Origin: Blastocystis sp. Blastoise
Taxonomy: Eukaryota; Protista; Bigyra: Opalinata
NCBI GenBank assembly: GCA_039096225.1
Contig: JBBPEB010000006.1
Coordinates: forward strand, 310,001 to 374,000
DNA: 64,000 bases
Direction of reading: 5' to 3'
Shown here piece after piece: positions 9,034 through 40,475 of this stretch (the first letter of the stretch is position 1; each line of letters begins with the position of its first letter). The notes below the pieces were generated by a model. It searched no databases. It was not told the origin of the DNA and saw only the letters and a list, made by a program, of their open reading frames with translations. The translations under genes were made by a program, and so were the position numbers.

Positions 9034-9543
9034 TTAAAGACGTTTACCATGACGAGACTTGCATTTACGGCAAGAATCGGTAGGGATGGGGGTAACATCT
9101 TCAATACGACCAATCTTCATACCATTACGGGCAAGAGCACGAAGGGCAGATTGAGCACCGGGACCAGGAGCAGGAGAACCAGCACCTCCAGTAGCTCGGA
9201 GCTTAATGTGAAGAGCGGTAATACCGATTTCCTTAAGTCTAGCAGCAACATCTTGAGCGGCAAGCATGGCAGCATAAGGAGAAGATTCATCACGATCAGC
9301 CTTAACTCTCATACCTCCGGTAATTCTAACGAGGGTTTCACGACCAGATAAATCGGTAACGTGAACGAAAGTATCGTTGAAAGAGGCAAAGATGTGAGCA
9401 ACAGCGAAAACTTCTTCACCATCCTTAACATTTTGAGGACCAAGCTTAACAATTTCCTTTTCCTTCTTTTCTTTTTTGGGAGCCAACATAAAATATCGCA
9501 TAATTTGATGCTGATGATAACATATATAATTAAGCCATACCAT
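9034..9543 (-). CDS. RPS14: 40S ribosomal protein S14 (uS11); probable intron directly after the ATG
   Basis: [17 protein letters not shown]...[23 protein letters not shown]...[13 protein letters not shown]...IEDVTPIP; ATG|GTATGG at 9543-9535. Confidence 0.98.
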
Positions 9544-9995
9544 TATTAGTATCCAAACAGAACTGCTGTAAAATATTATGAAAAACAAAACATTTTTTAA
9601 GGTATAAAAATGAATGGTCTATAAACAATATGATTATTATAAAAAATTGATGTACAGTGATTATCAACGACTTTTCCCATAAAAAAATGATGATTCAAAA
9701 AAATATTAAATTCCCGTTATTATTATTGACAATAACAAATTTTTATTTTTTTTATATGAATGCCTATTTTCAATAAGTTTTTTGCATGTAGATAGTGTAG
9801 AAAACATGTTTACAATCATATTGAGTTCAATTATATTCATATGAAAGAGTAAGCAATTCTTTTTTTAAATCTTCTATATTGGGATAACTAGCTTGATCAA
9901 TTGTTGATTGAGATAACAAAATACAAGTTGGCAACACAAAATATTACAAAAACTAAGAATAATGAAAGATTTTTTATAAGTATATTTTAGAAAGA

Positions 9996-11021
9996 TTAGT
10001 TCTTTTTATGTTTACTCTCATAGATAGTAGAGATAATGACATAAACAATCATAATAGCAACGAAAATAGCAACACCAACCCAAATCCAAGTAACGACAGT
10101 GTTTTCAGAAGTCCAACCAAACTGAGTAGAATCACAATCTATAAATATATATATAAATATATAAATATATATATACCGTTTCCATCAGTAGTATAAGTAA
10201 TATAAGAAGAACCATTCTTTATTTGAAGTGTATTACCTATATATATATATATATCATTATATAAAAAAACTTTAAAAAATACCTGAAGTCTTGAAAGTAA
10301 TTGAATCAGCCTTTCCAATCATAGCTTTCATTTCATCTAATAGAGAAACACCATTGGAATAAGTTATATATTCAAAAGTAGTAGATCTATATAAGTTATT
10401 CGATAAAATATATTTATTATAGTTAAATAAAAAAAAAATTTAAAAATATATAGGATTATTATTTATATATATATATATATATATATATATACTGAATAGA
10501 CACTAAAGTATCTCTGTTAACAATAGGTTTCATAGAATATCCGTGATTAATTAAATAGTTGATATCGTTAGTCTTTACATAAGCATCAGTTATAGAATAA
10601 GTATAAGTATGTTCAGCTATATGAATATCATTTAGTTATTTAAAATCCAAAAAATATATATATATTAATATATATATATACCATCAGTGTTATCAACAAG
10701 TCCATTAATTGACTTTTTATACACAATACTAAGATCCATACCTCTAGAACAATCACCAGTAATAAGAGAAATGTATTCTAAAATGTAAGAAGAAGTTCCA
10801 TTTTTATATAATGCTTCTTGATAAAGAACCTCTATAGATGTAAATAAGATTTTTAAAGATCAATCATAATTATACTTTGAGTTTCAGTTCCATTAAAAGC
10901 AGTACAATCACTTATATATCTTGTACCTAAAATAAATAAATCGGAAAATCAGTATTAAAAACATACAAGTTTGAGCAGAGGCAAGAAGAATAAAGAGAGA
11001 AACTGTAAGAATATAGTTCAT
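9996..11021 (-). CDS. Type I membrane protein of unknown function (signal peptide, C-terminal TM, KxKxx tail); 6 GT-AG introns
   Basis: Starts MNYILTVSLFILLASAQT; ends WIWVGVAIFVAIMIVYVIISTIYESKHKKN*; exons join in frame. Confidence 0.75.
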
Positions 11022-36371: not shown

Positions 36372-39300
36372 ATGAATAGTGAGAACCAAGGCATAAAACG
36401 AAGTGTATGTTAAGTTCATTATTGATTATATTGATTTCAATTATTTTATTCTAGGGTTCTAAACGTCAAATTACAAAACGTTCTTTTGATCTTGTTGGAA
36501 GGTATATTTTATATTGTTTTTATTTCGTTCTTGTTGAATTACTTATATTATTTTATTACATTTTGCTGTAGAAGAACAGGAATTCAGTTGAAAGAAGTTC
36601 CAAAAGATCAAAATGGAATAGAAGATATTGATCAATTATTTGATGAAAAATGTATGTTTTTATTTTTATATTTTATTGTAATACTTTTATAATTATTATT
36701 TATATTCTAAAGCTGAAATTAAAGAAGAAACAACTCAAGTGAATAGTATATATATTATTAATATTATATATATTATATATATTATATATATATTATTAAT
36801 ATTATATATATTATATATATATTATTTATATTATATATATAGATACTCAACCTACACCAGTTATAACAAAATCAAAGTATATATATATAAATATTTTAAT
36901 ACTCATATTTCTATAATAATAATAATAATAATAATAATAATAATAATAATAATAATAATAATAATAATAATAATAATAATAATAATAATAATAATAATAA
37001 TATATATATAGATCTTCAGACCCTATAATAAAGCGATTAACTTTTTCTCCTTCTCCTTCTCCGAGCAAACAAGATATAAACATACTCCCCAAACAGGCAG
37101 AAAATAATCGCGGGGATTCTGACCTATCCAGTAAATTCTTACTTATTAGTCCAATTGTCAATAAACATAATAATATATAAATATATTGTTATATATATAT
37201 ATTTATTACTATTATGTTTATAATTATACAAATAATTATAATTATTTATATATTCATATCGATCTATATAGATATATCAGCCAATAAAATCCTTGTTCCT
37301 TCAGATTATTCATTTAGTGAGCATTCTCAAGACACAAATAACCGCGGGAATGACAATGTTCCTACTACTTCTCCATCTTTGATAAATGAGAATTCTCTCT
37401 CTACATCCAATCCTCAAAAACCCAAGAATAACCGCGGGACAATCGATCCTTTTGACACATTTAATAAGGTTACAACTAGAAGAAGAGATTCAGAGAAAGA
37501 AGAAAGTTTTTCTTTTGGTGATGATATTGACCGTGAATTAGATTTGGATTATATTCAAAGTGACAACAAGGAAGAAAAAGAAAAGGAAAAATCAAGTATA
37601 TATGACTATATGTATTCTATTAATTATATATATTATATTTATTATATATATATGTTTTTTCTCTCTTTTTCCCTATATTCCCTACTCATATATTCCTATA
37701 TATATATACCTATAAAATAACATATAAGTATACCTATAAATATATCTATAAATATACCTATAGAGAAGATTGGTATAAGTATGGCTCCAAAAGAAGGATT
37801 AACTGGAAAACAATCCAAACAAATATACCTACAAAATATGAATAAGAAAAAGAATAAGAAAAATAGCAATGTATATATCATTACATACACTCTAAGATTG
37901 ATACATATTTATATATATATTTAAAGTATTATTATTTTTATTATTTCTTTTATATATTTTATTAATATAATATTATTTAATAATCAATAATACATAATAT
38001 ATATAATTCTATTTAACAATTCTTCTTTTAGAAATCCACAAATATATCTACAGATAGTATTTCATCATCATCATCATCATCATCATCTTCTTCTTCTTCT
38101 TCTTCTATGTCAACAACGAATATAAATACTTCTTCTCTTCCTTCTAAAAAGAATTCGAATAGAACAACCTTAAAATCTGCTTCTTTACAACATAGTTCTC
38201 GTAAAACTATAGCCTCTAAATCTATATTTAATTCAGATACTTCCAGATCAATTCAGCCATTAAAATCTGTGTCTGATGAAAACAATGATCTTTCTACATC
38301 TGAATTGAATATTAATGCTTCTTCTTCTTCAGAGAATGAGGATATTCAAATGCTTATAGATACAAATAATAATAGTTCTATAGATGATCATAATACGAGT
38401 GATAACAATGAAAATAAACAGAGTAAACAAGATAGCCCGCAAAATAACCAAGGGAATGCATCTCTAAGAAAAAATACTTCTAGAGTACAATCTATTTCAA
38501 AGAAAAACATAAACACTCAAAAAGATATTAATAAGTATATATATTTTTAATATACAAAATATAAATATTATTATTTTTATATTTCTTTATATAGATCACA
38601 TAAAAAACAAAATAAAAAGAAGTCAGGAATATCTCCAATAGAAAAGGAAGTGAACACAATTGCCTCTGACGCACCTCATTCCTCTAAGACACTTAAACGG
38701 AAACATAACGTATGTCCTCCTTCTTCTATTCAAGAGATTGAAGAGGATAGTATATTAATGCTCCAAGAAGATGAAGATAACCACGGGGATCTGGATATAC
38801 GTCGTAAATCTGTTATTCGTGATTTGAATAGCACAGGACTACAAACAGTTGAAGAAGATGGACGTATATAAATATATTATTATTATTATTATTATTATTA
38901 TTATTATTATTATTATTATTATATTTATTATATTTATTATATTTATTATATTTATTATATTTATTATATTTATTATTATTATTATTATTATTATTATTAT
39001 TATTATTATTATTATTATTATTATTATTATTATTATTATTATTATTATTATTATTATTATTATTATTATTATTATTATTATTATTATTATTATTATTATT
39101 ATTATTATTATTATTATTATTATTATTATTATTATTATTATTATTATTATTATTATTATATTTGTTTTTATTATTATTATTATTATTATTATTATTATAA
39201 TCAATAAAATATCTATATATATTCTTATATACATACATATCGTCGTAGTACCCGCCGTCACATCCCGCCATTACAATTCTGGAGAAATGAGCGTCTGATT

Positions 39301-40475
39301 CCCGTGAGACGGAAGGGCGGACTGGGACGTATTGGCGCGGAGGACACATTGGTGATTCCCGCGGAACCTGAAGAAGAAGAGAAGAAACAGTATGTATGAT
39401 ATTATAGTCTATATGATTCTATTGTTTTATCTGATTCATTATTATATACTATATATTAGTCAGTGATACATGAATGATTATATATATTGTTTTTGCAGCA
39501 TAAATATCTTATATATTATTATTTGTACTATAATTATTCTATATATATTCTTATTATAGTATAAAACATAAAACAATTAAAAAAGAAAAAGTTAAAACAG
39601 AATCACGCACTCAAAAGGAGCCAGTTTATGATGAAATTGAAACACAATTACCACCAACTATTCCGGACGATATTTCGTCAACTCAAACATATGCTGATAT
39701 TATTATTTCTTCACCTCAATCTGTGGATAACCGCGGGGATCTCCATGAGAATGAGGTATTGACTAGACATACGAAAGTACTTGATTATGTGAAACTGGCT
39801 ACTTCCTCTAAGATGCAATCATTATATCCCCGCGGGGATGAAAAACAAAAAACTATACTTGGAATGGGTATATATATTTCATTCATATATAAAGAGAGCT
39901 CATATAAATAGTTTTATTATTTATCAAATAAGTCTTTTCTATATATATGTATACTTGTTATACATATATTTTTTAATTATTTTTTTTATTATTTATGTTC
40001 ACATTATATATATTTTTCTATATACTATTGTTATTATTATTTTCTTTATAAATAAACTATATATATATATAGGAACGCTAGTAGATTCATCATCCTTTAG
40101 TGCCGGTCGTCTTATTATACCTCCTCAAGTCACTAAACCCGTGGAAATCATACCTAAATACAATCAGTTATTCATAATAACCGCGGGAGAGGATCGGTGT
40201 GGAGAGATACATATAAATGATGATCGTTTCTTATGTAGTCCTGGAGATCAAATATATATACCTCATAAAAATACATATTTAATTATTATATATACATATA
40301 TATATTATTATTATATAATTATTATTATATATATATATATATATATATATATATATATATATATATAATTATAAATAATAATATTTTTAGATATTTAATT
40401 ACAAATCACTCACAAAGGAAACAATTAGAAATTTCGTTTGTTGTGTTTCGAAATATAAAATCTGAAGAATTATAA
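36372..40475 (+). CDS. CENPC: Centromere protein C (CENP-C/Mif2); 13 introns (two non-canonical)
   Basis: N-terminal GRRTGIQLKEVPKDQNGIEDIDQLF (Mif2_N-like), CENP-C motif RRSTRRHIPPLQFWRNER, C-terminal cupin FSAGRLIIPP...GDQIYIPHKNTYLITN. Confidence 0.9.
38875..39198 (+). repeat. Intronic (TAT)n microsatellite
   Basis: About 320 bp of TAT units with a TATTTATTA block. Confidence 0.95.

Follow-up and report, generated by a model that had tools for sequence, protein, structure and literature searches.

Introns without GT or AG ends in conserved genes of Blastocystis sp. Blastoise are probably real, derived and spliceosomal

Background

Can introns that lack the GT or the AG of ordinary splice sites interrupt conserved, essential genes and still be removed? 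We address this question for a 64,000-nucleotide (nt) stretch of Blastocystis sp. Blastoise (assembly GCA_039096225.1, contig JBBPEB010000006.1, positions 310,001 to 374,000 of the forward strand; hereafter “the window”, whose coordinates we use throughout unless another sequence is named). A sequence-only reading of this window had joined about 145 introns by hand and had proposed that eight of them, in the genes for RPS14, RPS9, V-ATPase subunit C, an SMS-like protein and a CENP-C-like protein, restore the conserved protein only with other termini. We checked the eight junctions by reading the sequence and by colinearity with protein profiles, searching the exons singly. The proposal is largely right: seven of the eight junctions hold in the assembly, and a 41-nt piece in the V-ATPase C gene is a further candidate. 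In place of the GT or GC start and AG end of major introns, we find GT-CT, GC-AA, GG-AC, GT-AA, GT-AC (or GT-AT) and AT-AG. The odd-ended introns are probably real, derived and spliceosomal, and we think it fairly probable that they are ordinary spliceosomal introns from which point mutations have removed one or two end letters, and which the cell still removes at, or at positions equivalent to, the ancestral junctions. Splicing at the odd junctions is itself what we infer from genomic sequence.

The Blastoise genome comprises 33.34 Mb in 34 contigs with a GC content of 23% (24% in the window), and its source is probably the Russian-tortoise Blastocystis isolate Rus-B. The Rus-B assembly was built from Nanopore R9 reads with Flye and racon and polished by Polypolish and POLCA with MiSeq reads (Lind et al., Genome Res 2025, PMC12129017), and its annotation pipeline combined STAR, StringTie, BRAKER3 and Mikado (PMC12129017). 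BUSCO completeness was 42-43% in isolates from tortoises and 55-61% in those from humans (PMC12129017). Odd splice sites are not mentioned in that genome paper (PMC12129017), and our literature search found no paper on such odd-ended introns.

Results

The three introns of RPS9

RPS9 is present in a single copy in the genome. Its exons and introns in the window are as follows.

RPS9 exon 1, 15958..15985, + strand: MVTTAQHRN plus the first base of a Tyr codon
RPS9 intron 1, 15986..16117, + strand: GT...CT, 132 nt; equivalent shifts TG-TC, CT-AT
RPS9 exon 2, 16118..16257, + strand: profile positions 11-56
RPS9 intron 2, 16258..16336, + strand: GC...AA, 79 nt; shifts CA-AG, AT-GC, AG-TA, AA-AT
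RPS9 exon 3, 16337..16681, + strand: profile positions 57-171
RPS9 intron 3, 16682..16870, + strand: GG...AC, 189 nt; shifts CG-TA, GA-CG, AT-GG
RPS9 exon 4, 16871..16927, + strand: 18 amino acids and a stop; profile positions 172-188; missing from the NCBI model

At the joins that restore the reading frame, all three introns are odd-ended, with the termini that the sequence-only reading had given them. The closest RPS9 matches are Blastocystis proteins at 74-76% identity and a relative, P0001, at 86%. Exon 1 reads MVTTAQHRN where P0001 has MVTCAQHRN, so that seven of the eight residues after Met are identical, and its GC content is 40%, compared with 9-25% in the introns. Removal of intron 1 (15986-16117, GT-CT) gives MVTTAQHRN/YRKTS (a slash marks the join), colinear with P0001 MVTCAQHRNYRKTS. 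Against a profile built from 160 full-length homologues, exons 2 and 3 abut at positions 56 and 57 once intron 2 (16258-16336, GC-AA) is taken out, and removal of intron 3 (16682-16870, GG-AC) brings the end of exon 3 at position 171 next to exon 4 at 172-188. Intron 3 has no usable AG near its 3' end; the alternatives there are AT-AC (16691-16870, adding three amino acids) and GT-AT (adding two). In total, about six end letters are changed beside about 560 intact exon bases.

The ancestry of two of these introns can be read from related genes. At the sites of RPS9 introns 2 and 3, the relative has canonical introns, as its polyA transcript (L005) and genomic contig (L004) show: its intron 3 reads ccc/GTATGT...TGTAG/gga, at the identical codon boundary, and its intron 2 ends ...CTAG/gct. 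Genomic reading frames of human-type Blastocystis run GRP/V... and KIRK/VF...LQ/AAREL, that is, the introns at these positions begin with GT and one ends in CAG. RPS9 introns 2 and 3 therefore sit where relatives have GT...AG introns, and their GC-AA and GG-AC ends are derived.

The L004/L005 lineage is a Blastocystis with RPS9 86% identical, a much GC-richer coding sequence and short canonical introns; it is present in one Logan genomic contig and four ENA metatranscriptome assemblies. A repeated CGGTCGT at RPS9 intron 3 had suggested germline-type eliminated sequence or a transposon with a target duplication, an idea that we rejected because the repeat consists of the two Gly-Arg codon pairs of GRPGR.

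An odd-ended intron and a repeat-flanked piece in the V-ATPase C gene

The V-ATPase C gene is likewise single copy in the genome. The part in question lies on the reverse strand.

V-ATPase C exon, 31764..31829, - strand: VYIVRWCRPNFSDCYSSWVHLK; Pfam positions 276-295, own profile 294-313
V-ATPase C intron, 31699..31763, - strand: GT...AA, 65 nt, in a perfect GTATAT...ATATAA context
V-ATPase C exon in the conserved frame, 31625..31698, - strand: CIRLFVECALRYSIHVNVTAISIFP; Pfam positions 296-319, own profile 314-337
Intervening frame-shifting piece, 31584..31624, - strand: 41 nt, flanked by a 13-nt direct repeat TTTCTATATTCCC

The proposed GT-AA join from 31763 to 31699 stands, as the two exons meet without a gap both in Pfam (276-295 and 296-319) and in our own profile of 26 homologues (294-313 and 314-337). 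Downstream of it, the copies of TTTCTATATTCCC at 31637-31625 and 31596-31584 make the ends of the 41-nt piece ambiguous over 14 registers, none of which has a GT or an AG. Taking the piece out restores gap-free colinearity (positions 314-337 before it and 336-350 after it, with the repeated SIFP aligning to the same positions), and the frame downstream is confirmed by the next intron, which is canonical.

Existing models of the two genes

The NCBI models of these genes, WA158_003080 for RPS9 (15729-16702) and WA158_003085 for V-ATPase C (31326-33326), force GT-AG junctions and lose conserved parts. The RPS9 product, P0198 (217 amino acids), begins at an upstream ATG and joins GT15986 to AG16092 in another frame, a join that puts what follows out of phase with the conserved start codon; it then joins GT16253 to AG16337, giving AKM-P-ARELL in place of the universal AKxRKAARELL, and stops within intron 3 (GRPGCYIYI*), so that profile positions 1-8, 55-56 and 173-188 are absent. 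The V-ATPase C product, P0121 (KAK8811351.1, Blastocystis sp. Blastoise), which matches the V-ATPase C exon of the window at 100%, joins GT31763 to AG31661; part of exon 31625..31698 is skipped and the remainder misread in another frame, leaving 22 unrelated residues where homologues have a conserved helix. A gene finder restricted to canonical sites, run without RNA input, gives nearly the same models, and these models are therefore no evidence on the RNA.

When we looked for homologues of P0121 in sister tortoise strains, we obtained only P0121 itself, and a search for contigs encoding P0121 found none; an exact exon word had no match in JGI metagenome contigs, exact look-ups of two single-exon proteins had none, and PDB searches with exon pieces of 20-25 amino acids had none.

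The CENP-C-like, SMS-like and RPS14 genes

Three further genes account for the remaining junctions.

CENP-C-like intron, 38864..39232, + strand: GT donor, no AG; TATAC at 39232 (GT-AC) is the most consensus-like 3' end
CENP-C-like last intron, 40275..40390, + strand: AT...AG, 116 nt, flanked by an 11-nt direct repeat ATATTTAATTA
SMS-like (PAP2_C) intron, 34439..34615, - strand: AT...AG, 177 nt, 5' end ATATCCTC
RPS14 coding sequence in one exon, 9037..9489, - strand: starts at ATG 9489-9487, MLAPKK...

In the CENP-C-like gene, a GT donor at 38864 without any AG before the next exon had been claimed, with a 3' end near 39238. The donor and the missing AG are as described; the best 3' end is 39232, and 39238 (GT-AT) is likewise in frame. 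The exon that follows carries an RRSTRR...FW motif and has no start codon of its own. At 38880-39200, inside this intron, a (TTA)n microsatellite of about 300 nt is open in all three frames. The last intron of the gene (40275-40390) is AT-AG as claimed, with the upstream exon reaching position 67 of 85 in the CENP-C_C profile; the ATATTTAATTA copies lie at 40275-40285 and 40391-40401.

For the SMS-like gene, the AT-AG junction is unique by frame, with a second in-frame AT start at 34594. The proposed termini stand, and the intron, whose ATATCCTC start resembles a minor-spliceosome donor, is better read as a putative minor-spliceosome intron.

The GT-TG intron proposed for RPS14 (9484-9540) is a mis-join. 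It is not needed because the in-frame ATG at 9489-9487 yields MLAPKK, and translation from there (MLAPKKEKK...) gives full uS11 without any join. Upstream of this start, on the same strand, lies a further in-frame ATG at 9543 with no stop between the two, and the 5' untranslated region may hold a GT..AG intron of 30 nt.

Intron consensus and the frequency of odd ends

To place these cases among the introns of the genome, we used a Viterbi gene finder with a repeat-aware background that penalizes every odd end by e^-8; a first-pass version without that background read through (TA)n and was discarded. Introns have a mean GC content of 12.5% and a strong canonical consensus, GTATAT...TATAG (of 110 introns, 62 carry GTATAT and 79 carry TATAG), in agreement with the earlier description of nearly all introns as GTAT...TAG. 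The finder gives 117-126 introns in the window, not about 145. Ends other than GT/GC-AG occur in 5 of 117 introns in the window and in 11 of 349 (3.2%) in an independent 200 kb (C8:500001-700000), so that the proportion called is 3-4% where about 5% had been claimed; these rates are lower bounds because the finder favours canonical detours. RPS9 intron 2 is still called GC-AA despite the e^-8 penalty.

Context, repeats and end pairing at the junctions

The odd 3' ends TATAA, TATAC and TATCT replace TATAG, and the odd 5' ends GCAT and GGAT replace GTAT, so that an extended consensus survives, with G-N-A-T on the 5' side and T-A-T-A-N on the 3' side. A context score restricted to +3..+8 and -8..-3 places the odd junctions at the 13th-100th percentile of canonical sites (110 introns) and at the 74th-100th percentile of intron background, compared with the 0-15th percentile of canonical scores for the canonical alternatives that the NCBI models use. 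The claim that the wider TA-rich context is retained while the end dinucleotides vary in intact essential genes is supported in silico, because the RPS9 introns are orthologous to those of relatives, the profiles are gap-free and the context scores lie within the canonical range.

Direct repeats at the junction, a sign of recent intron gain, set two pieces apart. The longest junction repeat in 445 canonical introns is 8 nt, and repeats of 11 or 13 nt occur in 0 of 445; only the 41-nt piece in V-ATPase C (13 nt) and the CENP-C-like intron at 40275-40390 (11 nt) have them. To judge from their repeats, these two were probably gained as introns only recently, by insertion or during break repair. 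Pairing between the two ends of the same intron averages 6.48 pairs against 6.30 for shuffled pairs (p about 0.01-0.02); it reaches 9 base pairs (bp) in V-ATPase C and 8 bp, closed by G-C, in the CENP-C-like intron, and is weak in RPS9 introns 1 and 2.

Splicing machinery

The sequence-only reading had pointed to divergence or loss in U1, U5, U6, Prp8, Prp18 or Slu7 as a possible basis of relaxed splicing, and this was not found: all are present and standard-looking. The major small nuclear RNAs (snRNAs) have standard boxes (U1 ACUUACCU, U2 GUAGUA, U5 loop GCCUUUUACUAA, U6 ACAGAGA and AGC), and any relaxation is not visible in the snRNAs. Genes for Slu7, Prp18 and Prp8 are present, and Prp8 domain IV aligns full-length with human Prp8 at an E-value of about 1e-108, roughly 70% identical by our own count. 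Within that domain (L047 1501-2187, - strand), the human hairpin motif RVTIH reads RVVLH, and 1137 codons of the Prp8 gene form a single open stretch that no intron interrupts. AT-AG introns lie within the conserved SAYY/DPKSR motif of the Slu7 gene (L019 1366-1502, - strand; G000:C22) and at the conserved TTKE/YM of a Prp16/Prp22-like DEAH helicase gene (G000:C8:641218-641336, - strand).

The minor snRNAs U11, U12 and U6atac are also present in the genome; U12 scores below the Rfam cut-off, but with E = 6e-7 and a GAGTAAGGAAA box. In U6atac (L013 1501-1617, - strand), the sequence of the box pairing with minor 5' splice sites is GCCGAGAGA; the human box is AAGGAGAGA. Look-alikes of the minor 5' motif [AG]TATCCTT occur in the SMS-like intron (ATATCCTC), in one register of the 41-nt piece (ATATTCCC) and at CENP-C-like 40275 (ATATTTAA), and there is none in the odd introns of RPS9 and V-ATPase C. 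For the minor branch-site box TCCTTAAC we find only degenerate AT-rich look-alikes, TATATAAAC 2 nt before the AG of the SMS-like intron and TTTTATTAC in the 41-nt piece. Sorting ATATCC motifs by hand for minor introns yielded too many chance matches.

Elsewhere in the window, ARAGORN calls a tRNA at 46670-46758 (- strand) with a two-letter anticodon call, which may be a tRNA gene with an intron.

Discussion

Point-mutated spliceosomal introns and what weighs against them

Conserved single-copy proteins are restored gap-free only by the odd joins. If these are ordinary introns with mutated ends, the major spliceosome would tolerate A, C or T for the last G and A for the first G, and the 3' site would probably be located by the UAUA context or by position, not by AG. 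An ATATCC-type intron such as that of the SMS-like gene would be cut by the minor spliceosome, which accepts several 3' dinucleotides.

Several observations weigh against this reading. In yeast and mammals, the second splicing step does not proceed at 3' sites other than AG or with A at +1. It is unexpected that all three RPS9 introns are odd if odd ends are scattered at about 4%. In-frame canonical or semi-canonical alternatives exist, at 15961-16092, 16253-16337 and AT-AC 16691-16870 in RPS9 and from 31763 to 31661 in V-ATPase C. The assembly is a Nanopore R9 assembly polished with limited MiSeq data in AT-rich DNA from a mixed culture. Finally, the annotation used RNA-seq and prefers RNA-supported introns (PMC12129017), and its RPS9 and V-ATPase C models use canonical sites.

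Alternative explanations

The alternative that survives best, though we consider it unlikely, is that the nearby canonical or semi-canonical sites are the ones used (those of the NCBI models, with AT-AC for RPS9 intron 3), that the proteins are altered or truncated, and that the “conserved” segments are recent relics. P0198 and P0121 do use such sites, several of them in frame, and the pipeline behind them favoured RNA-supported introns. However, these models drop the RKA of AKIRKAARELL, the N-terminus and the GRVARK tail of RPS9 and profile positions 314-335 of V-ATPase C, and the skipped segments keep a coding-like composition and family similarity, whereas introns are about 12% GC. The canonical alternatives also fit the consensus poorly (0-15th percentile), and the models can be reproduced without RNA. 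AT-AC is a compensating pair of intron ends, which counts for this alternative at RPS9 intron 3.

A bolder possibility, to which we give little weight, is that cut sites are set by (UA)n context or end pairing and not by GU/AG, in which case any end letter would be possible and new repeat-flanked pieces would be removed at once. If true, a stramenopile would have a structure-defined mode of splicing, with a parallel in the nonconventional introns of euglenids. A structure-guided mode is a minority reading because within-intron end pairing is only slightly above that of shuffled pairs.

That residual assembly or polishing errors changed true GT and AG letters is hard to sustain, even for an assembly with the history given above. 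Errors would have to have made about six substitutions among the 12 end letters of the RPS9 introns and none in about 560 exon bases, and intron 1 would require two adjacent ones. Each splice site is no further than one read length from unique exon sequence, which short reads can polish; neither the 41-nt nor the 116-nt piece can be a base-call error; and the independent 200 kb has a similar odd-end rate. Random errors, like the mutations of dead alleles, should also strike exons far more often than the four end letters of an intron. Random assembly error is very unlikely, as are dead alleles; the latter, in a polyploid genome, we rejected on finding the exons intact. Pseudogenes with a functional paralogue elsewhere were also rejected because RPS9 and V-ATPase C are single copy.

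We are just as doubtful of a separate excision mode for the odd introns, and especially for the repeat-flanked pieces, that would be independent of the end letters and might be guided by pairing of (UA)n ends, in the manner of euglenid nonconventional introns or the odd introns of Fritillaria. GUAUAU... and ...AUAUAN ends are complementary, as the pairing in V-ATPase C (9 bp) and in the CENP-C-like intron (8 bp) illustrates; within-intron pairing does slightly exceed that of shuffled pairs, and no canonical intron among the 445 has junction repeats as long. However, the pairing effect is tiny and is to be expected of introns with (TA)n on either side; pairing is poor in RPS9 introns 1 and 2, and the RPS9 introns have canonical spliceosomal introns as orthologues.

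Pre-mRNA editing that restores GU and AG before splicing, which had also been suggested, finds no support and is extremely improbable: A-to-I changes could convert AA to AG and AU to GU, but they fail to explain most of the termini (CT, AC, GG and GC), nothing in our analysis points to editing, and we know of no such editing system.

Comparison with known intron systems

Introns of the human subtype ST1 are 98.3% GT-AG, 0.5% GC-AG and 0.16% GA-AG, with about 1% minor AT-AC (PMC5608401). Blastoise, at about 96% GT-AG, is not far from this; the major introns of human subtypes occupy the same positions in RPS9, and U1, U2, U5 and U6 are likewise present. Unlike theirs, Blastoise introns are long and (TA)n-rich, with GTATAT...TATAG, and about 3-5% have other ends, including 3' ends in AA, AC, AT and CT and A at +1, neither class of which has been reported for ST1.

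Blastocystis minor introns have a median length of 39 bp (PMC5608401; PMC10639083). Blastoise shares U11, U12 and U6atac with the species that carry them (PMC5608401; PMC10639083), its SMS-like intron starts with ATATCCTC, and the 41-nt piece has the typical length of such introns. In contrast, the SMS-like intron ends in AG where minor introns end in AC, and the odd introns of RPS9, V-ATPase C and the CENP-C-like gene lack the ATATCC/GTATCC donor of minor introns.

Outside Blastocystis, the tunicates Fritillaria borealis and Oikopleura dioica reportedly have abundant non-canonical introns that are handled by the major spliceosome, as Henriet et al. are said to have described in Curr Biol in 2019; many of them are reported, in the same work (Henriet et al. 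2019), to derive from transposon insertions. In these tunicates, several per cent or more of the introns in normal genes reportedly have odd ends and are apparently removed with a standard set of snRNAs, as is probable for Blastoise. Blastoise differs in being a stramenopile and in its classes of ends, and at least in RPS9 the odd introns are old ones whose ends have mutated. The nonconventional introns of euglenids, attributed to work by Milanowski and co-workers, reportedly have variable ends, short direct repeats that blur the borders and complementary ends, all of which are seen in Blastoise. Most of these shared features follow from (TA)n composition, however, and a separate mechanism is without support here.

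Implications

RNA-seq of the isolate is already public under BioProject PRJNA1041441, and a search of sequencing runs pointed to one that is likely RNA of this isolate, with 40% of words, and to a polyA metatranscriptome from gut. If RNA confirms the junctions, Blastoise would have a natural spliceosome that works without a 3' AG, and sometimes without a 5' G, in 3-5% of introns, including those of essential, highly expressed genes, and it would offer a rare handle on site choice and proofreading in the second splicing step. In practice, published gene models of the tortoise isolates go wrong at introns of this kind, as RPS9 and V-ATPase C illustrate, and mis-modelled odd introns may partly explain the low BUSCO completeness of these isolates.

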